The translations under genes were made by a program, and so were the position numbers. A stretch of 64,000 nucleotides of DNA from Oikopleura dioica. Taxonomy: Eukaryota > Animalia > Chordata. Below are positions 15,688-33,600 of the stretch, in pieces; position 1 is the first letter of the stretch; the number at the start of each line of letters is the position of its first letter. The stretch covers positions 13,268,001-13,332,000 of the forward strand of contig OU015567.1 of NCBI GenBank assembly GCA_907165135.1. The letters run 5' to 3'. Below the pieces are notes generated by a model. The model was given only the letters and a program-made list of their open reading frames with translations, was not told where the DNA came from and did no database searches.

Positions 15688-18600
15688 TTAATTATTGGCT
15701 TTGAACTCGACTTCTGAGTAGATTCGTTCTGGCTCTCCATCGCGAGGGATCACTGTCAGGCCATTGTTGCGACTCCCTGTAGCGAGATCGAAGCCTCCGC
15801 CTGCGTTTGGCTAATTCAAGATGGTCATTAAAGTCACTTTGTAAAGACTAACCTGGCTAAAACTCTGATTGGGAATGGAACCGATGTGGGCACCTTGAGC
15901 CGGAAGTTTTGGAATGCCATTATTGTCTGAAATTATGTATCAAAGAATGAATCAATTTCGAAAGCTCACCTCTAGAATACATGCTTTCAGCGTCGTCTCC
16001 CTGTGGCAGTGAAAATTTCTGACCAGTCCAGACGTTGGAGTTATCGACAACGACGCGAGGACGTTGCCAAGAGTGTCGTTTCTGGTAGAGATCTTCCAGA
16101 TCTTCGTGAATTTCAAGCACTTCATTCTTACTCGTCGCTGTTGCCATTTCATGGAGAATCTGCGCGTCACGATACGGGTTCTCGATTTCGATCTCTACTG
16201 GTAACTTCGCTGTGGAGTCTCCGATTCTCTAAACAGGAATAGTTCATTTATCAACAATTAACGACTAAACCTTTAGCTCGCTGGGGTCAGCACTTTCTAG
16301 TTTTATCAGATTCGTGACCGGTTCTTGCTGGTTAGTAGACTTTTCCAAGATCTGTTGTTTCATTTGATCGATTCCGTTATAAATGTCGTCCACTTCATTC
16401 TCATCGTCATAGTTTTCCTCCCCGTCATCAGCTGTTGTTAGCCGGGTTGTTCTTCCTTCTTCCACTAACAAAGCTTTCAAAACAAGAAATCTAGTTATTT
16501 TACCCACCTTTTGTGACTTGCTCAAGTTGATCAGCATAAATGCTCGCGCGGAGAGCATCCCAGAAGTAAAAAGTTTGGCGACCGACATCTTCAACTGGAT
16601 ATTGGATAAAAGTCTTCTCAGCCATAAGAATCTTCAACGCATGAGGCATAGAATTCCACGGGATTGGTTCGAGGACAACAAGGACTATCCCATCCTAAGA
16701 AAAATAGAATTGAATAAATAAGACTCATCAAACCTTTCTATTTCTTCTAGTTAAGTCGTAAATAGCTTGCAAGCAAAACAGACAAGCGTCAGAAGAAGCA
16801 AACTCAGTCGTAATGATGATGATAACGCGTTTGTTCTGTTCAACGCATCTTCTAAGCTTTTCGTTTTTCACTTGCGACTTGATGGTGAAGACGTCGATGT
16901 AAAGCTTCTCGCATCGCAGTTGGCTCTCTTGAGGTTTCTGCTTTAATGTCGGCAGCATTATATCAGTTACCCACTTCTGTGAATTGATGTGGCAGAGAAT
17001 AGCTGCGTCGTTCTTGACAATCTTGAGATTCTTTGCCGCGACGCCACCAGAAGTGACTACTTTGTCGCCAACGCCAATTCGATTGCGCCCACTCAGGTCT
17101 TTCATCTTCATTCGATGACGACGGTTCTTCGAAGCACAGAAAACTACTGTTACGACGATGCCTAGAATGACAACGATGGAAATAGGCGCGAGGATTGACA
17201 AATAGCGGAATTCGTTTTCGTCCTTTTCATTTTCGCAAACAAGCTTGTCCTGTGTTAACCGCAGCAGATTAAGGTTGCCAAGAAGGCGCGGAATTTGACA
17301 TTTGTAGGTGTTTTGCGCCTGACGAATTCCAACTATTTTCACTCGACCGGGCTCTTGAACAAATTGGACGAATTTTTTCAGTTGACAGTCGCACTGGAAT
17401 GGATTGAATCTTGCGTCAAACTGTTCTAGGGCTCCATAGAGATACGGATCAACGGATGTTCTTATTTGGTTTTCAGAAACATCGAGCATTCTCAAATTAG
17501 GCAAATTGGCGAAATTCAACTCTTGAATCGAGTTCTTGTGGAGATCCAGAACCTTTAATTCTCGCGCGAAGCTGAAAGTATTTCCTGGAATCTCTGTGAT
17601 CTGATTCGACGAAGCATTGAAGAACTCCAAGTCTTCTAGGTTGACGAAGTCGTCGATGCAAAAATGCGTGAACTGGTTCATCGAAAAGTCAATGCCACGC
17701 AAATTGTGGAGATTCTTTAGCTTGGAACCTTCCAATGCAGCTTTTCCCGGTTCCGGAACGGAGTAAAGTGAATCTGGTGGCCGGCAGATCTCTTGTAGGT
17801 TCGTCAAATGATTATTGTGCAGGATGAGCTGATTGAGAGATACAGGGAGCTTTTCCGGAATAGATTTGATTGCATTTCCGCTCAAATCTAAATGTTCCAG
17901 ATTGCCAGCTTTCGACAAGACTCCTCGGTCCAGGTGAGTAATTCGTCCTCGCTCACGGAGGTCAAAATTTAAACATCCATGAATTATGAGTTTCTTGAGT
18001 CCAATTGCACTCTCCAAGTTCCCACTTTCAATTCGTTTTAATCTCGTGCAACTTTTTAATGGCTCAAAACTGCTCATGAAATCAACGAAGAGAGTTGTCT
18101 TTTCAAGCCATTCCTGAGATGTAGTTCTGTCAATGTCGGAGGAAAGTTATCCTCACCCAGATCTTCTATTGGATTTCTTGTGAGCGAGATTTTTTCCAAC
18201 GTCAAAAAGTATCCTGATTCGTCCTTGAAGCTGGGAACAGTGGTAAACTTGTTGAATGAAAGATCTATCTCAGAAAGGCTTCTCATCGCACGAATGTCCA
18301 GTTCGAACAGTTTGTTGAAGGAAAGGTCCAGAGTTTCTGTTCCGTGAAGTGAGGCAAATGCGCGTTCTTCGACTTTTGCCAAGCCGTTACGAGAGATGTT
18401 GAAAACGCGAACATCACCGAGCCCAGAGAGTTCGATTTGGTCAATGTTTACAATTTTGTTCTCGGCGAGTTGAACGAGATAAGCATTTGAGGGAATCTCT
18501 CGGGGAATAGAAGTAATCAAGCTTCCGCGCTTGTCGCAGAAAACGTCTTGCATGTCGTCTTCCTCATCCGAACTATAACAACGGCAAGACTCCGGACAGC

Positions 18601-19464: not shown

Positions 19465-21861
19465 CTAGTTTTTCTCGTCGCCCGAAGTTTCGATTTCAAG
19501 TTGCGGGGACTGAGGATTGTGTTCCGGAGAGGAGGGAACTTCGCGTGGCTGAGAAACGCTTTGGGCAGCAAGTTGAGCTGCACTCTGAGCAGCAAGAAGA
19601 GGGTTGAGATTCGCAAGACCGGTAGGATAGGCTGCGGAGACTGCTGGGTTCAAGGCGGAAGCAGCAAGACCAGGGAGGCCAGCGGGGTTAGCGCCTAAGC
19701 GAGCGCTAGCAGCGAGAAGACTAGAGTTTTGTTGGGCGGCGAGCTGAGCTGCCAAAAGTGGAGAAGGAGCTAAAGATTAAAATTGAATACTTGTTCAACA
19801 ATTATTGAATCTCGAAAGCATTGACCATTCGTAAAATTCTTACCGCTTCCAATCGCTGGAGGAAAAGGCCATCGAGTAGCTTGCTGAGCAGCGAGCTGTT
19901 GCATCATCATGGCGATGAAGTTGGGATCGATCGGCCATTGAGTGGCTTGTCGCTGTCGTTTGTCTTTCATTCGTCGGTTCTGGAACCAAACCTGAAAACA
20001 AGAGTTAACTCTGATCAATCGGAACGAAAAGCTTGAAATGTCAAATCTGCGCTCTCCAATTGAGGCTCATCTCACGACATATAATTGGCGAGTTTATATC
20101 GCTGCTCTCGATGAATTATATCAATATTATTCCGAACTGAAAAATTCATGGGCCAATTATGCAGTCACGCGGGGCTCGGTTTTGAGCTCTAACTAGCACG
20201 TTTATTGAAGCTTATTAGACAGCTTATGCATCGATTCCGGCAATAACGGGAGTCCTGGGAGCACTAGCCACATTATTAGCAAATATCAGCACAAGGATGC
20301 ACTAATAAACGCTCATTTTCGACGATCTTTGGTCCGTATTTCGTTGAGGTCACGAGTTCACTCAGGATGCGCGAAAATCAACATTTTGTATATCTTTGAA
20401 TATCTCCTGTAATTGCCCTGATTAAAGTTGCCTTAGAAAGGAGGGGATGATCTACCAGGGCAGGTGCAGGAAACGGGTGATTTTAGCTTATATGGAGTAA
20501 TAATTGGACGCCGGGCACGATCAAAGCGCTTCACCGGAAGTTTGAAAATCGATGAGCTCGAGGGGTGATAATAGCTTTTGAAATTAATGTGATCAAAGAG
20601 CCGTAATTTTCAAATAAATTATGTTACTTTCAATGTCGAGCGTTTACAACGCGTACTGAAATCATCATCAATGATAATAATCGCCACTTTTTGTTCATAA
20701 ACTTGGTTTAAATCTTTCCTTTCTATCTCCTACGTTACCTTAATTGTGCCTTCTGGAAGATCCAATTCATTCGCGAGTTCGCATCGTCTGTGCCGGCTGA
20801 CGTAGTTTTCTTTGAAAAACTCCTTCTCCAGCTTTCCGAGTTGCTCCCTGAATAAACTGCTCACAATCGGTGTTACAGTAAAGCTCGCTTACCGAGTGAA
20901 AGCAGTGCGATATCGCCTGTAGCAGCTGTCTTCTCGCGACATGTGATGGTTCTTCTCGTTGATTTCAGGCGACGAGGTTCGTGAGTGAGTTTCAAGACCC
21001 TCGTTTTTCGACTCTAAAATGTGAGTTGACTAATGATTGGGTATTGTCAAAATTGAGGATGTGATAATGACAATTGGGAATTCAAATGAATAAGCTAATC
21101 GAAGGCTCATTCTCCGATTAATCAGCAGCCTCCAATAAACCTGAGTGGGAAGGCGCTCGCCCTATAGGTGGGACCCGACGCGGCTTCCGGCGACGAAACG
21201 ATAGCATGATCCTTCCTTGCGGCGAAGGTGCCAAAACGTTTGATCCCGCCCTCCCATGATAAGCGGAATTCAAGCAATTTCGATTAGCGGGTTGGGAATT
21301 GAACCTTCAATGAAATGTTCGAGACACGCTGGCGTGTGATCGAGAGGTACAGTTGTTGAAACTGATACAAAAATGGTGGAGTTCAAAAAGAGCAAACTGA
21401 TCGAAAAATCATCGCATCAAGCAAATAAATGATAATTTCTTCTGTTCTGAGTCAGCAGATCATTCCGATATGATTATTTCCACCAAGAATTTCAATGAAA
21501 AAATAACGATACATTTCGCTTCACGAATAATCGAGAACATCAAATTATTACAAATCAAAAGAGGTTCAGTTAAAAATTCCCCGCGAATACCCTCTTAGAG
21601 GAAAATCTCCAATGAAATCTAAGGATGCGTGGTTGATTTGTTTGAATTTTCGAGTACTCTTCTATGATTTCAAAATTATCCAAAAAGCTCAAACTTACCG
21701 AAAGAAGTAGACGTGGAGCTGCTTACATCTGGTGTTGGAATTTGATGCTCGTGATCACTCTGAGGTGACCCAGAGGCTTTCTGTGCGCCCTGTCGGCTCT
21801 TTGAGTTGATGATGTTTTCAACGGAGAAGGGAGAACTGAACTGGGATTGAGCAGTAGCCAT
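19465..21861 (-). CDS. Evx: Even-skipped homeobox protein
   Basis: Homeodomain RRYRTAFTR|[36 protein letters not shown]|[14 protein letters not shown]; N-terminal eh1-like FSVENI; Ala-rich C-terminus. Confidence 0.95.
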
Positions 21862-25836: not shown

Positions 25837-26342
25837 TCAACTAAAACTTGGACTTGTTGTTATCCGGCTCCTGAGAAGATCGTGGAAAGTATCCTCATTT
25901 CCATGATGAAATACGTACGGGACAAATTCTAGCGGACGATCGCCCCAGTGTCCACCGCGTTTTTCAACGAAATATGCGCAAACGAGGCCTGAAAATGATT
26001 TCAAGGAGAGAGAGATTTATTTCGGGAAAACGGCTCGTCGAGCGGCGCGGCTAAGTGACGAGCTCCAAAATTACGTTCTCTTCGACCATGTTTGGCTAGA
26101 CTTTAAGAACTGATTTTGGATTAAAGGCAAAACAGACAGTGACCACTGTCACCACAATCGCTATCGTCTTTGAGAATCTTGGGACGAAATTTCAAAGTAA
26201 ACAAGTTATGGTTTTTAGTAAAGAGGTTCTTTTTCTCTAGAAACGACTTTAAAGTCATACCGTAGCAACTCAGCACGGTGAAATAAAGAGCAAGAGCTGA
26301 GGAATCCTTACCTAGGAGAAAGAAAATCGTATAAGTTTGCAT
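25837..26342 (-). CDS. Small secreted prepropeptide B (neuropeptide-like)
   Basis: Exon 26342-26312, GT-AG intron 26311-25989, exon 25988-25837 give MQTYTIFFLLG|LVCA-YFVEKR-GGHWGDRPLEFVPYVFHHGNEDTFHDLLRSRITTSPSFS* (60 aa): signal-like N-terminus and a KR site. May splice further at the GT at 25853. Confidence 0.6.
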
Positions 26343-26730
26343 AACTCTTTTTCTGTTAAAATCTGCAAAGACTTATTTACCCACTGCGAAAGCTGAAAAC
26401 ATCTCCCTGCAAATACTTTAAGGAGCTTTGACGCCATCACGCGCTTGTGCGAAATATATGTAACGATCTTCTTAGGCGTCAATCGTAATCATCGACTTTT
26501 TAATTGTCTTCTTAGATTCTAAGAACGAGAATATAGACATAGCAATTGACAGCTTGATTTTGTATTTTTTATTTAAAATGCGAGTGAAAATATGGAAAAC
26601 ATCAATAAGTGACTTTTATCGGGAAGAATTTAGAAGGCTGCGCCAAATACGGAGGAAAGAAGATCGTCTTTTATCGGATGCAATGATATTTTTGAGTTTT
26701 TCAACACTTTACCCCTATTAAATCTCATTT

Positions 26731-26991
26731 TCAACCCCTTGCATCCATATTCTGCTGGTGGTTGTCACTAAAGAGGTCGGAGGAAATGTCGTCAAAGTGG
26801 GACCGTTTTTGGTATGGCCTAAAAAAATTTTATAAAAACTGAAATTTTAATATTTCTAAACCTTAGTAATGGGAATCCCCGTTTTCCGTAGAAGTCGAAT
26901 CCTTGAGGAAGAGCAGCAACTAGACCTGAAGCTCTCAAGTTCTCTTCTATGCTATCATGTTGTCATTACCTGTAAGAAAAAGAAGCTTCAT
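26731..26991 (-). CDS. Small prepropeptide A (neuropeptide precursor-like, amidated peptide predicted)
   Basis: Exons 26991-26970, 26925-26862, 26818-26731 with GT-AG introns of 44 and 43 bp give MKLLFLTG|LVAA-LPQGFDFY-GKR-GFPLLR|PYQ-KR-SHFDDISSDLFSDNHQQNMDARG* (57 aa). TATATAAG lies about 45 bp upstream. Confidence 0.75.
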
Positions 26992-27035
26992 CCTAATAGT
27001 TGTCTCAAATCTACTGCCAAGCAGTTTGCGTTTTG

Positions 27036-27043
27036 CTTATATA
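27036..27043 (-). promoter_or_regulatory. TATA box of prepropeptide A
   Basis: TATATAAG on the minus strand about 45 nt upstream of the ATG at 26991, with an Inr-like GCAGT roughly 25 nt downstream of it. Confidence 0.55.
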
Positions 27044-27383
27044 CCCAAGTTTAATTCGGCGAATTGGTTAAAGCTCCCCCAAAACTCGAGATGAGCTAAT
27101 TGCAGAAGCAATAGGAGTTTCCTCTAAATTAGCAATCCTTCTTTTTAATAATCTCATGCACTTGGGCGCGTATCATGCTGACCTAAGACAATTAGTAAAA
27201 TTATTTCGAGGAGTCTCTAGATGAAATGAAAAATTTCTCTTGAGCAATGATTCTCGTGAATCGAGAGTCCAGAAAATAAACAGTGCCATTGTGAGAGAAG
27301 ATGTGGCGTCTCGGAACTGCAGGTTACAACAGAGGATCTCCCAAACCAAAAAACGGTTGATTCAAAGCTTTAAGATTAAGACA

Positions 27384-28102
27384 ATGCAATTCGAAAATTC
27401 AGGATCGCAGAATGGAAGTAGCAGCTGTAGCACATGCAGTATGAAGAAGCCGAATCCTGCCGAATCCTGTGCTGCTCTCAGTGAAGAACTTTCAGAGATA
27501 ACAAAGAGAGGAAAAGCTTTATCATATGAAATTTTGAAGAAAAAGAAGAAGGTGAATGAAATGAAGACAGAAATCAAAAGTTTAGAAAATCAGCGGAAAC
27601 AGAACAACAGAAAAATGAACCGAGTCATTGGTAAGATCATTTAAAAATTTCAAGAAAAAATGCTCTCTTCTGCAGAACAATTGAGACAAACAACAACGTC
27701 GTGGAATATCTCACGACTTCAAATTGATGCTACAAAAGAACAAGATTTATCAGACAAAAACGACGAAATATCAATGATCGAAGACATGGTAACTTGATTT
27801 CTTCTTGATTTTTATCTTTTTTCATATAATTTCAGGAGTCGACCATATCTACACCAGAACGATCCCCGTTTTCTACTGGAACTGACTATGAAATTTCTTC
27901 TGAAATCGAAGATTCAGCTGTTTGGCGATCTCCATTCTCGGTGGAAAAAGTAAAGACGTCGTCTCTCGTCCCCCGAAGAGCCAGCAAAGCCTCCAGTCAT
28001 GACCCCTGCTTTTTCAAAAGTGGCCAGCGTGCTTCCCGATTCTCATCTGACAACGACGACAAGAAGCCAGTCATAAAGTTCCTTGGATATCACAACTCCT
28101 GA
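27384..28102 (+). CDS. Coiled-coil protein of unknown function
   Basis: ORF with heptad-rich LSEELSEITKRGKALSYEILKKKKKVNEMKTEIKSLENQ, followed by two GT-AG-flanked exons. Confidence 0.55.
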
Positions 28103-28390
28103 AGAGTTCTTTCAGTGAAGTTATCTGTCCATTATTTATCGAAAATAATTAACTGCCCCATTTATCAAAATTCCAACTCTTAAATAAAAGTCACTGACCT
28201 TGAATTTTGCACGCGTGTGGTCATCAAAGCTTAGCACGCGTTCATCCTCTTTGGCTGATACTAGATTGCTGAGACTCTTGCAGAAATTTTGCGCCCAAGA
28301 ACTCCCGAAAGCAGAGAGTAGAAGGTTAGAGAGAGAGAGAGTTGAGGAAAAAACAAGAAAGAATGCGCTGAAGAAAAGAAAAAAAGAAAA

Positions 28391-30137
28391 ATGGGTCAGT
28401 CTGGTTCGAAAGTTCGAAAAGTCTTTGCAATATGTTGCTGGGCTGAACTTGTTCTGGGAATAATTGGTTTTGGAACGGTCATTTGGATCAAGACCAGTGG
28501 CATCAATAAAAATGTAAAAGGTTTGAAAAGATGCTCCTCCTTGATTTTCATCGCGAAGAATTTGTTATTCCTGAGAGTTAAGAATTTCTTAAGATTATGT
28601 TTTGGGAATAATTGGGGCGCTATATTTTATCCTTTGCTCGGTGCTGGGAATTCTTGGCAGCTCATGCTCGTCCAGTTGTCTCCTTATTCACCACGCCAGC
28701 TGTGCCATCCTGTCTGCAATGATTACTTCTGCGGTGACTTGTCTCTACTTGATCGGTACCGTACTTCCGCTTGCTATTTCGAAATACAACAAGCTCCTTT
28801 TTAGATGATACAAATTTATCCGGCTTCAAAAGAGCCCCAGAATCTTGGCAAAACAGCTTGATTATTTTGGGAAGCTTGATCATGACTATATGCTTTTGCT
28901 TGTCAATTCTCGGAGCGTATTGGGTCAGAAATGGAATAATCAGAGGCGCAGTGATAAAAAGTCGAGTGACTTCTCCGACTGTTTTCGTATGAAATGGTCC
29001 TCATGAAACAGCTTTTGATATTCTTTAGTCGGGAACACAGCAGGGCAAAGACTACAGGATGCGGATTCCAGAGTTTGAAGGAAGAGAAAGAATAGAGCGC
29101 GGCTTATCACCCGTCGGAAGATCAGGAAATCAAAGAAATCATTTGGAAACGCGCTCTGTCATTTCTTTCCGCCCGCCATCGACACGACAAGGTACTGTAC
29201 TCTACTGCAGCATTGAAAATTAAATTTATCAGGGGCAGCTTATTCTCGTCTTGAAAACATGGATCGTCCGGAATCGCGCATAAGCATGGCATACAGAAAC
29301 ATGGAAGGAGGAACTTTTGATCGTTCAGAAAGTCGACTATCTCGTCGATCACTAGGTCCTCCTCGTCCTCCACCGCCAAGATCTCCCCGTCCAGAGTCTC
29401 CAAGAGTCGAGACGACGGATCTCAGCCGTTTGGGATCTTTAGGTAACAACTGCGGATATACAGTATGTTTTACGATACAGTATACAGTGGCTTTATCGAA
29501 TTGATGACCGAGAGCTACCTTAGATTCGCCAGATAAAGTTTCTAAAAGGAGGCTTTATAAAAGAAGCAACACATCGCGAATTGAAATGATTTCAGATCGT
29601 GAAATGGTTCGCCAAACTTCCAAGCGCGCGAGCATGATCGAAGAAGAAACAAGAAAGGTAAGAAAGGAAAGAGGAGTTCCTCTTTTCAAGGGTTTCTCTA
29701 GCCAAGTTTTTAGATAAAAGTAGAAGAAGCTAAGAAAGTGTTGGAAGAAGAAGCAAGAAGAAGTCGGGATGAAACGCAATCTAATCAATCAGAGTTCGGG
29801 TCCGAAAAATGATATATTCGGTTGACAACAATAATGATGTAAATGAAACATTACGGTTTAACAACAGTGGCGCCTAAAAAGATCATCGCCATGTTGTCAA
29901 TAAACAAGGTCCGACCCCGAAACGGAGAAACGTATTGAGCCAATAACGCCACCTTCTATGCCGCAGCGGGTGATCCACCAAGACCCCTCAATCGCTTCCT
30001 TCAAACATTCGACACATCACGTCCCGTCCGGGCGAATTACATCCGGCCCGAGTTTGGACACTTTAGACAAGATTCTTTACGACGCAGAGGATGGAAAATC
30101 GGATCACGGGAAGAGCACGTTTTCTGTCAATTATTAA
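28391..30137 (+). CDS. Tetraspanin-like four-TM protein with a long cytoplasmic C-terminal tail
   Basis: Four hydrophobic segments (FAICCWAELVLGIIGFGTVIWI; VLGIIGALYFILCSVLGILG; LLIHHASCAILSAMITSAVTCLYLIGTVL; LIILGSLIMTICFCLSILGAYWV). The GILGSSCSSSCLL loop resembles tetraspanin TM2-TM3. Followed by several Pro/Ser/Arg-rich exons. Confidence 0.6.
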
Positions 30138-30855
30138 CCTATCTAACCTGCAGCATGATTTTGGACAATAAACAAGCAGTTTTTGTTAAATAAATAGCGG
30201 ATTTATATTTTCACAAGTTCTACAGAGTAATAGTAAGTATGAGTTAAACCGTTGGATCATATAAATGTATGTTTGGAACAGCGCGTAGTTAAATATTTAA
30301 AATACCAGAGAAATTATACCGGCCCAACTTGAGCACAGTTAATTTCGCGTTGGATTCCGCAAAATCGCCAAAACCAAAACCTGGGTCAAGTCGATTTGGG
30401 AAGACATATCTACAAGAAATTATAATACATGACTGAATAATAATGTTGAAAGAGAAAATTGAACTGGTAAAGCAACAAGGCAAAAGAATTTTATGCTGGT
30501 GGTGGTTTTTAGCAAGAATGTTAAAAACAGAGTAAAGGCAACTTTGTTGGTAGTTATTTAGGACACTGGCCGGCAGTGAGCGATTGTTTTAGTTTTTAAT
30601 TGGAGATGAATTAAGAATAGAATATTAGAATATTTCTCGATTGAGTGAACACTTTCATCTGAAAGTCGTTTCATTGAAGTTTTAGAATAGTACCGTTTTT
30701 GATAGGGCGTAAATGTTAGAAGGAAGATACAAATTCTGTAGCTTGGTAAAGTAGCGTTTTTAATAAGCGTTATAAATTCATATTCTGAAACTGTTCTCTC
30801 TACCGCAATAATTGAAGGCAAAAGTACGTAGGAATTTTTTGTTCATTCACTCGGA

Positions 30856-33600
30856 TCAAGCATCAACCTGGATTTCTTCGTCCTCATCGGTAAGATGTTC
30901 ACCTTCACTCACAGCGATGGTGCCCTGATCCTGGATGATATCTTCGCGTTTAACCAGCGGCGTCTGTTCTACTGTAAGCTCTCGCTTTGGCAGGACGACG
31001 GCAGGTTGATGTTGAGTGTGGATGGGATGCGCGACTGTTGAACCATTGCTGGCAGATCTATCAATTACTACGGGCGGAGTGACAGTAACTGGCTTGAAGA
31101 GTGGCATAAATCCTCCGGGTGCTTTGATTTCGATCTTCGCCGTCGTCGGTTTCTGATCAGGCTGGGTATACGCAAGGACGTACTCGGGCTGCTTCTCAGT
31201 CTTTTTCGAAACATTTATGGAAGAAATCATGGTGGAAGAAGTTCTAGGGCTGTGTTGATCGTCACTCTGTTTTTCAAGGATGCATCGGCGTTCGATACAT
31301 TTTTGCTTCAAACGACCGGGGCCGCCAAATTTGGGTTTATCCAAGCAGAAACGACAGCTTTAAACATGATTTGATTTCTTACACTAAAAGGACTAGAATT
31401 ACCTTCCACAATCTGGTGCACCGCAGGGTTCACACTTGTGGCATTGAAAAGTAGGCCGTCGTCTATAACTTCCTCCTCCTTCATTCGGACTTTTCGGCGG
31501 GGTTTTCTCAATGCGAGCAATTTCCCCTTTCTGGTCGATGATTCCGATTTGCACGCGCTTCTCATCTCCATTTTTCACTTCGTAGCTTGATTCGGAGTCC
31601 TTTCGCGAGCCTTAATTTATTTTGTCAATTTCCGCTGTCATTTACAAAAGATGGGATAATAGAAAGCTCAATCCTTTTTAGGGTGATCAGTTTAGACAAT
31701 CCGTTATTCAATTTTTATCGATTCGTACCTGTAGAACCAGTGCTCCTGCGACAGCCTCGAATCTGACTCTGGCGATAATAGACGCACGTTCGGAGACGAC
31801 ATTTGCGCCGCTTGGTGTTTGGCCCGCCGAACTTCGGCTTGTCGAGACAGTAATCGCACTGACCACAGTCGTCTAGGCGTTGACAACGGTCGCATCGCCC
31901 GCAAGCCTAGATATAAGTTTAAGCACAGTTGTTGAAGAAGCAATTTTTTTTAGAAAAAAATTCATCAAAAATTGAACTGACATAAAAATCAATTGATTAT
32001 TATGAAATGTGCCGGGAATAAGGAAATTCCATTTCCCCTCGCATAACAAACCTGCTTCTTTTCAACGGCTTTGGCGAGTAGCTGTTCCCTCATGTTTGGG
32101 CGATCTGCGGTGAGCGGCATCCGCGCCGCTGCCGAATCCGCCAACAATGACAGTCCAGAGGTCATGTGACTCACTTTCACTGGGGGTCCTCCGTTTCCTT
32201 GACTTTGGGCTTGGATTTGGTGCTGACCGTTAGCACTAACCGCCTGGTTTACCCCATTGATCGAGGAATCACTGCCGGATACTTCGATTTTAACGGAAGC
32301 TTCTTGATGTCTCCGCTTTTTTGGGAGAAGATCATGTCCAGCCTAAATCAAAATAATCTGAGATACGAACAATTTATATCTAACTTATCGATTAAAAATC
32401 TTAGATCTACAAGCGGCTCTAAATTTTCCTTTGTTCTTACCTTTTTTTCGGGGGAAAATCCATTTTCTTGAGAAAGTTGTGCCTGAAGTCTGTGATGATT
32501 AGTTGGGGCACCATTTGGCGTTGTTTGCGCGAGTTTTAGAGAGATCTGCGGGCTCCCGTTCTGTGCAACAACTGCTCTAGGCTTCGGTTTCAGCGGCTGT
32601 TGCTGCGGTGTTGCTGGTGGCGTCCATCTTTCACACGCCAAGCATTTCACTCCGCCAGCCTGGACGATTTCGCAGTCGACGTGCCGGACCTGTAATTTCA
32701 GGATTAAAAATTATAAAATTTAAATTGCACGTTTTCCGTTCGAACGATTTCCTTACAGATTCGGTGAAAATATATCCTATTTATATATAAATACAAGCTT
32801 TGAATTTGAAATTTTATCCACTTAGGAGTGGGTTTGTGCGCAGCGTCTTACCGTTCTGGAAAATCTATCTTCCACCGCGACGCGATTATTGTCATTATCG
32901 AGAAAGACCGCTGTGCCGAGCGTTGAAATTGATCGGCAAATATTCTCAGCGACTTGAACGCCCGGGCAAATTTTGATTTTCAGCACGCTGCTGAAGAAGA
33001 GCTCCGCGGTATCGTGTGTCACGCGTTCGGGAAAGTTTGGAAGGGCCAGTTCCGGGCACACTTTTCGCCCGTGAATTGTTAAGTCCCAGAGTAGATCTTT
33101 GTAAATGTGGATGATGTAGCTGGCGGAGACATCGAAGATCGGGTCTTCAGCGAGTTGCATGAGTCGGACAAATTGGACCTGAAGAGAGACGTTTATGTAT
33201 TTATGTCGTTTATTACTGAGTCGAAGAGGCTGAGTGTCAGACATGAAAGAAATAGAGACACGAGCAGCAGCTGTATCTTACACGCTGCGTGGAGTACAGC
33301 CCCACGCGGCGTTATTGCCTTGGCTAAGCGGTTTTCGCACAAAAGGGAGCTCGATTGGATTATTACAGGCAGCCCTTGGAGAAACTTTGGCTCCCGCGGT
33401 CGCCGATTCGACACAGCTAGACACACGGCTCAACAATTAGGCCGACTTACTCTTTTATCATCGACTTTTTCGGGAGAATGAACGAGGAGAAATCCATGGG
33501 GTGCGGCGACGGAGCAGATTTTTGCAATGGTGTTTATCGCCGTCTGATTCTCGATCTTCTGTGCTTCCTGCTTTACGGAGTGCTCTGTCTTATGTCCATT
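30856..33600 (-). CDS. Protein with two CXXC zinc fingers plus an N-terminal Cys/His domain (5' end uncertain)
   Basis: CGRCDRCQRLDDCGQCDYCLDKPKFGGPNTKRRKCRLRTC (about 31770-31905) and CHKCEPCGAPDCG|SCRFCLDKPKFGGPGRLKQKCIERRC (about 31285-31445). Upstream WDLTIHG...KICPG...|VRHVDC...KCLAC. Confidence 0.85.

Follow-up and report, generated by a model that had tools for sequence, protein, structure and literature searches.

The DNA analysed here, a 64,000-nt stretch of the Oikopleura dioica genome (GCA_907165135.1, contig OU015567.1, positions 13,268,001 to 13,332,000; hereafter the window), raises the question of whether a short region of its minus strand conceals a spliced gene for an amidated peptide. 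An initial annotation had proposed a precursor at positions 26731-27043 that releases LPQGFDFY-amide. We asked whether such a gene is real, which parts of its product are maintained by selection and whether the product can be assigned to a known peptide family.

Results

A three-exon gene hidden from ORF lists

Read on the minus strand, the locus contains a gene of 57 codons in three exons, with the ATG at 26991, the stop codon at 26733-26731 and two GT-AG introns of 44 and 43 nt (Table 1). Each intron contains stops in frame, so that a plain ORF list misses the gene and reports only fragments of it. The initial annotation had described a TATA-preceded, 57-residue gene with introns of these lengths that was invisible to the ORF track; the minus strand indeed reads in this way, and the orthologues presented below back the splice frame. 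The precursor has 57 residues, no cysteine and one copy of the peptide. No paralogue was found in the DNA and protein searches of its own genome (64.28 Mb, 19 contigs), which makes this a single-copy locus.

Table 1. Features of the locus and of the adjacent small gene, in window coordinates.
Feature	Position	Strand	Description
Conserved promoter block	27044-27125	-	Upstream of the TATA box; shared ...TGTGCAAT...TTTTGG...CTTAA.CAATT..GCGAATTAA... in the three-way alignment
TATA box TATATAAG (tatataag)	27043-27036	-	52 nt upstream of the ATG; GGGTATATAA invariant in 3/3 genomes
Exon 1, coding part	26991-26970	-	MKLLFLT and first base of the split Gly8 codon; signal-peptide-like start
Intron 1, 44 nt	26969-26926	-	GTAATG...TTCAG; phase 1, inside the Gly codon
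Exon 2	26925-26862	-	LVAALPQGFDFYGKRGFPLL and two bases; putative signal-peptide end LVAA, then LPQGFDFY, GKR and the start of the variable spacer
Peptide LPQGFDFY	26911-26888	-	Within exon 2
GKR	26887-26879	-	Inside exon 2, directly after GFDFY
Intron 2, 43 nt	26861-26819	-	GTTTAG...TTTTTTTAG; 12% GC
Exon 3, coding part	26818-26731	-	PYQKRSHFDDISSDLFSDNHQQNMDARG and stop; PYQ is the end of the spacer
Second KR	26808-26803	-	Exon 3
Acidic C-terminal peptide, 23 residues	26802-26734	-	Exon 3; conserved
Conserved block, presumed 3' UTR	26642-26680	-	AAAAGACGATCTTCT...GTATTTGGC; blastn 84.6% to L026 1820-1857
Conserved CACTCGCA motif, then AATAAA (26573-26568)	26568-26590	-	Presumed polyadenylation signal, about 160 nt past the stop
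Downstream small gene	26342-25837	-	Exon 1 26342-26312 (MQTYTIFFLL and G of a split Gly), 323-nt intron, exon 2 25988-25837 (LVCAYFVEKRGGHWGDRPLEFVPYVFHHGNED...)

Intrinsic features compared with chance

As a null expectation, every ATG-started model with at most two GT-AG introns of 38-60 nt was collected from simulated copies of the window (third-order Markov, 100-400 copies). Per simulated 64 kb, a spliced ORF of 40-150 aa with a signal-like start was opened by about 33 ATGs, and about three of these also possessed a G-[KR][KR] motif together with a second dibasic site. When a TATA box was added, 0.06 models remained per simulated 64-kb window; when splice scores at the level of the candidate itself were added, the value was 0.0075 per window, which amounts to several per genome. 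The intrinsic features alone are weak and do not place the gene clearly above chance.

Mini-introns that join ORFs, taken from 264 kb of the genome, served to train the splice matrices, with GTAA donors as the seed; the resulting modal intron length was 42-46 nt. Unseeded EM was rejected as a way to obtain the matrices, as it settled on coding decoys. The donor of intron 1 scored among the top 0.8% of GT sites and its acceptor among the top 7.5% of AG sites, and the acceptor of intron 2 among the top 0.01% of AG sites. The donor of intron 2, GTTTAG, scored poorly on this matrix, which is biased by its GTAA seed against GTTT donors. A survey of donors was suggestive only.

Orthologous loci on metagenome contigs

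A degenerate DNA pattern for GFDFYGKR/S detected 52 metagenome loci, and 51 of them were compared with the window, leaving out L068, which lies on a contig labelled as human-gut metagenome. Matching flanks were present in one of the 51, the marine metagenome contig Ga0115008_10012571 (6,921 nt; hereafter L026); the remaining 50 had unrelated flanks and were rejected as relatives. L026 runs colinear with the window from 25.8 to 31.9 kb and is oriented alike; its flanking genes are strongly conserved and its intergenic DNA is unalignable. On its minus strand, the TATA-box sequence GGGGTATATAAC is followed by ATG AAA CTT ATT TTT CTT GCC G and by an intron 1 of 50 nt (GTTTGT...TTTTAG) placed in the same split Gly codon as in the window. 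Beyond this intron L026 has one uninterrupted exon, FAAALPKGFDFYGKRVPFLQPANRMSKRSHFDDISADLFSDNQKENMDVWI, followed by the stop, and intron 2 is absent. Since L026 reads the exon 2 part straight into the exon 3 part, the splice frame predicted for the window is confirmed. Moreover, the frame beginning KRSHFDD is conserved, and thus in the window it can be reached only by removal of the 43-nt intron as predicted. In the reciprocal search of the whole 64-Mb genome, the L026 protein matched only exon 3 of the window (E = 4.7e-6).

A third version of the gene was recovered by an exhaustive profile search with exon 2, in which the top match was P0008 (E = 2.8e-11). This 46-aa gene call comes from a pair of short ENA metagenome contigs, L076 and L077, of which L077 lies entirely within L076. 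P0008 is the unspliced read-through of this version. In L076, exon 1 is identical to that of the window (in L026 it encodes MKLIFLA and carries synonymous changes as well), and intron 1 is 45 nt long, open in frame and located at the same position and in the same phase as in the window. Exon 2 reads LVAALPPGFDFYGKRGFPI, intron 2 (44 nt, donor GTTTGA) occupies the same site as in the window, and exon 3 reads PMHKRSHFDDISSDL, where the contig ends. P0009, another match of the exhaustive search, was spurious, being a repeat protein matched on SLPAGLT.Y.

The 5' splice sites of the GTTT type are GTTTAG in the window (26861-26856), GTTTGT in L026 (2229-2224) and GTTTGA in L076 (618-623). These introns are real, because the conserved reading frame fixes them, and consequently splice models trained on GTAA donors would miss some of the real introns here.

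Conservation also extends to the non-coding surroundings of the gene. The 90 nt ending with the TATA box are 71% identical between the window and L026, against a mean of 58% and a maximum of 64% for shuffled sequences, and the identity of the promoter block to L076 is 85%. The block in the presumed 3' UTR sits in a flank that otherwise cannot be aligned with L026. Positions 1775-1741 of L026 carry the same CACTCGCA motif, again followed by AATAAA, and this hexamer would serve as the poly(A) signal in the window.

Purifying selection on the spliced frame

Codons were compared exon by exon, and synonymous and non-synonymous changes were evaluated with the Fisher test (Table 2). Between the window and L026, with 30 synonymous and 114 non-synonymous sites, 21 of the 34 differences were synonymous, and the synonymous sites were saturated (pS 0.70). 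GFDFYGKR is identical in the three genomes and differs from L026 by five synonymous and no non-synonymous changes; the exon 3 block, 25 codons long, differs from it by 11 synonymous and 8 non-synonymous changes. The identity to L026 was at the shuffle level in intron 1, in the 5' UTR and in the 3' flank.

Table 2. Synonymous and non-synonymous changes in the spliced frame.
Comparison	Codons	Synonymous/non-synonymous	dN/dS	p
Window and L026, all aligned	48	21/13	0.06	5.5e-10
Window and L026, without the 8 codons fixed by the search pattern	40	16/13	0.10	1.4e-6
Window and L026, without exon 2	33	14/10	0.04	3.3e-7
Window and L076	35	6/1	0.045	8e-4

Exactly this spliced frame is, as the codon comparisons indicate, under strong purifying selection, and the observation lies far beyond chance. 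On the same grounds the locus is almost certainly a real coding gene. The divergence falls into two levels, with dS of about 0.3 at one and above 1 at the other. Cryptic lineages of O. dioica have been reported to have split about 7 and 25 Mya, and high intron turnover is cited for them (PMC11067885). Both the splits and the turnover fit the two levels of dS and the presence or absence of intron 2.

Unequal constraint along the precursor

In the three genomes the N-terminus reads MKL[LI]FL[TA]G[LF][VA]AA, with variation in residues of the h-region (L/I, T/A, L/F, V/A), and residues -3/-1 of the proposed signal cleavage site are V,A or A,A in each of them. The start is composed of M-K, a run of 11 hydrophobic, uncharged residues (mean Kyte-Doolittle about 2.6, calculated by hand) and V-A-A or A-A-A before Leu-Pro; with 12 residues it is unusually short. 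The layout of this hydrophobic start, whose shortness the initial annotation had already pointed out, is retained in both orthologous loci.

The peptide and its processing signal read LP[Q/K/P]GFDFY-GKR in all three genomes. The pyroGlu-GFDFY-NH2 variant that had been considered fails as a conserved product, because the orthologues have K or P instead of Q at position 3 of the peptide (Q15 of the precursor). G21 is the same in all three genomes, with the codon GGA or, synonymously, GGG in L026, and the dibasic pairs K22-R23 and K33-R34 are kept in the window, L026 and L076; loss of GKR or KR from orthologous loci, which it had been suggested to look for, was not observed.

The least conserved stretch lies between the KR sites, where GFPLLRPYQ, GFPIRPMH and VPFLQPANRMS (9, 8 and 11 residues) differ by indels of whole codons. 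This stretch looks like a spacer at the sequence level, and the earlier suggestion that GFPLLRPYQ is a second bioactive peptide appears doubtful given its low conservation and its indels. After the second KR, the sequence SHFDDIS[SA]DLFSDN..NMD is nearly invariant, and the acidic C-terminal 23-mer ranks second in constraint among the parts of the precursor. It had been expected that other genomes would show conserved peptide cores with divergent spacers; the GFDFY core is kept and the stretch between the KR sites diverges as anticipated, but the acidic part, which had been labelled a spacer as well, is conserved. Under a simple spacer model the acidic tail would not be expected to be so strongly conserved, and the 23-mer may be either a second product or a sorting/pro-region.

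Neighbouring genes and conserved blocks

The small gene downstream (26342-25837) is found at 1036-1555 on the minus strand of L026, where its intron measures 358 nt, and shows a dN/dS of 0.14 over 51 codons (p = 8e-7). It resembles the GFDFY gene in having a Gly codon split in phase 1 and followed by LV. A recent tandem duplication as the origin of the two genes was rejected, as their DNA similarity did not exceed that of shuffled sequences; an ancient paralogy is possible, given the shared Gly split and the LV after it.

Two short blocks near this gene are shared with L026. A 35-nt block (window 26408-26442, L026 1620-1654) is 88.6% identical amid unalignable DNA, lies about 70-100 nt upstream of the ATG of the small gene and is probably a promoter element. 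The other block (window 26033-26085, L026 1312-1366; 85.7% identity) is located in the long intron of the small gene and contains the inverted repeat GCTCGTC...GACGAGC; its RNA fold was not better than that of shuffled sequences (z = -0.69) and no Rfam match to it was found.

The divergent neighbour on the other side, a 134-aa ORF at 27240-27644 (plus strand), shows only weak similarity to L026 (32% over 37 aa), whereas the genes at 28159-31908 share 68-82% DNA identity with it. It is either a fast-evolving gene or not coding as read. An Evx-like homeobox gene of four exons occupies 19465-21861 on the minus strand (protein motif at about 19971-19988), and the two peptide genes are situated 4-5 kb upstream of it. 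In addition, an LRR/TIR-type gene is present at 16265-18553 (minus), whose full-length products P0001 (99% identical) and P0002 (90% identical) occur on short ENA and JGI contigs. These identities imply that marine meta-omic data contain transcripts or genes of this and of a sister lineage.

Availability of the processing route

Exons for Cu2_monooxygen domains were detected at three loci of the genome (G000:C4:3930677-3930892, G000:C5:4794948-4795181 and G000:C4:12417801-12418233). For the two loci that were tested, the best match among solved structures was PAM/PHM (peptidylglycine alpha-amidating monooxygenase), and the genome may contain more than one PHM-like gene. Exons for the P_proprotein domain of convertases are present at about six loci. 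Thus, with PHM-like and convertase exons at hand, the processing route is available in this genome. In four RNA runs carrying the same species label, 0 reads mapped to positions 26000-28400 of the window (2.4 kb), the neighbouring gene being empty too.

Comparison with known peptide families

All searches with the gene's protein were conducted exon by exon. The precursor had no match in Pfam at E values up to 10, and Rfam gave nothing usable. Its neighbours in a protein language-model space (ESM Atlas) included several peptide-hormone clusters, only at chance-level scores of 0.79-0.81, which are below the reliable range. A word search of 5.8 billion proteins with a 47-aa frame around exon 2 returned no match; as the neighbouring 134-aa ORF was also absent there, this collection hardly covers the genome and the absence is uninformative. 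No related locus was found with the octamers AALPQGFD and FYGKRGFP; in the true orthologues, single substitutions interrupt both of them. The literature searched contained neither the string GFDFYG nor a study of Oikopleura or larvacean neuropeptides.

In its general layout the precursor resembles amidated neuropeptide and peptide-hormone precursors, which are processed by PC2/PC1, carboxypeptidase E and PAM: it is small and hydrophobic at the N-terminus, with small residues at -3 and -1; its invariant core is followed by G-K-R, the spacer up to the second K-R is variable, and the flanking peptide is acidic. It differs from them in having a single copy of the peptide, a very short putative signal peptide of 12 residues and an unusually conserved C-terminal flanking peptide.

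The initial annotation had pointed to a loose likeness to CCK/cionin GWMDFamide and to echinoderm NGFFYamide of the NPS/CCAP family, and the defining features of both families are missing here. The CCK/gastrin/cionin family is characterised by a C-terminal W-M-D-F-amide and an upstream sulphated Tyr. Although a short amidated peptide with Gly-aromatic-x-Asp/Phe near its C-terminus in a tunicate is reminiscent of it, we rejected the assignment, as these two features are absent and all three genomes have G-F-D-F-Y before G-K-R, so that the amide would be on Tyr. Pedal peptide/orcokinin peptides combine an FDEID-like N-terminal and a GFGF-like C-terminal motif in one peptide, present in multiple copies. 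SHFDDIS presumably recalls NFDEID, and GFDF presumably recalls GFGF; here they belong to separate peptides, in the reverse order and in single copies. With the NG peptides/NPS/CCAP the peptide shares an aromatic-rich, presumably amidated C-terminus and a Gly before the aromatic run (x-G-F-D-F-Y versus N-G-F-F-Y). Membership in this family (NGFFFamide, NGFFYamide) was nevertheless rejected, as the Asn-Gly is missing (Q, K or P precedes Gly) and there is no neurophysin domain and no cysteine. O. dioica has been reported to lack both the receptor and the precursor of the NG-peptide/NPS/CCAP system (PMC4422128).

The nearest analogy in kind may be offered by the Ciona Ci-LF and Ci-YFV/L peptides: these are likewise short (about 5-10 residues), restricted to tunicates, aromatic or hydrophobic at the C-terminus and devoid of relatives outside tunicates. 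They are named for their non-amidated C-terminal LF or YFV/YFL. Membership in this group was rejected on a comparison of motifs, as the peptide described here has FY at its C-terminus and an amidation signal after it. Presumable O. dioica sequences fall in the urochordate LF-receptor clade (PMC6475428), which implies that orphan peptide receptors of such a kind exist in larvaceans. Judged by its sequence, the GFDFY-amide precursor most likely belongs to no described family, and it appears to be lineage-restricted and unreported.

Discussion

We propose, with a probability of roughly 0.7, that the locus is a true gene, maintained by selection, whose 57-residue prepropeptide is secreted, processed and amidated. 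Transcription would start about 30 nt past the TATA box, and both mini-introns would be spliced out. The 12-residue signal peptide MKLLFLTGLVAA would be cut after V-A-A. A prohormone convertase would then cleave after K22-R23 and K33-R34, and a carboxypeptidase would trim the basic residues. The peptidylglycine alpha-amidating enzyme would use G21 to produce LPQGFDFY-NH2, in which the GFDFY-amide core is invariant and position 3 is free. The acidic 23-mer (SHFDDISSDLFSDN..NMD..) would represent a second product or act as a sorting/pro-region. We infer the secretion, cleavage, amidation and receptor signalling of the product from the conserved sequence, and we consider the chance that it is a neuropeptide in the strict sense to be slightly below even.

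One alternative is that there is no gene, and that what was taken for one is either a spliced ORF that arose by chance or conserved non-coding DNA, for instance an enhancer of Evx or the plus-strand neighbour's promoter. Random sequence does yield about three comparable ORFs per 64 kb; with the TATA and splice filters added, 0.0075 still remain per window, or several per genome. However, 21 of the 34 differences from L026 fall on the 30 synonymous sites of the frame (p = 5.5e-10; 1.4e-6 without the searched codons), introns and UTRs are unalignable, the spacer indels comprise whole codons, the position and phase of the intron are conserved, and the orthologue in L026, having no intron there, reads through the predicted junction. 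Comparison of these sequences excludes a chance ORF or a non-coding element for practical purposes, and this alternative can be regarded as effectively refuted. It is very unlikely, too, that the gene encodes a micropeptide that is neither secreted nor processed and acts in the cell or at a membrane, with the hydrophobic start and the KR pairs bearing no relation to the secretory pathway. The hydrophobic stretch of about 11 residues, the predicted signal peptide of only 12 and the highly conserved tail would agree with such a protein. On the other hand, the start has an n-h-c layout whose small -3/-1 residues are kept in the three genomes while the h-region varies, as in signal peptides, and the Gly and both dibasic sites are invariant even though the spacer between the pairs varies freely.

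A secreted product that is neither neuronal nor endocrine is a more serious competitor, though still an improbable one. Such a small protein or peptide might function in the house-building (oikoplastic) epithelium, in antimicrobial or other defence, or as a gamete factor or pheromone, with furin-type maturation at the dibasic sites and with amidation incidental or absent. Conservation shows only that the protein matters, the acidic 23-mer is conserved as much as the GFDFY core, and no known neuropeptide family matches. What speaks for the amidated signalling peptide instead is the classic layout of such precursors, namely an aromatic core that does not vary and is followed directly by G-K-R, another K-R further on, a tiny precursor and a TATA-type promoter; moreover, with eight residues the mature peptide would be too short to fill a structural or antimicrobial role of the usual kind.

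Starting from the amidated prepropeptide as the preferred reading, we tentatively suggest that GFDFY-amide might found a larvacean-specific neuropeptide family and might form, together with the gene at 26342-25837, a peptide cluster upstream of Evx. It could be the ligand of an orphan GPCR from one of the urochordate-only clades, with the acidic 23-mer as a second, non-amidated signalling peptide.

Genes so small and split by mini-introns escape ORF scans, and the locus demonstrates that, where RNA data are not at hand, models of tiny eukaryotic genes can be validated with contigs from environmental metagenomes. It also provides a clean case of intron presence and absence between cryptic lineages and shows GTTT-type donors used in real introns here. 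The brain of Oikopleura, a chordate, consists of very few cells; for this animal, a conserved orphan amidated peptide would be a concrete ligand with which to map expression in situ, perform knock-downs and deorphanise receptors.
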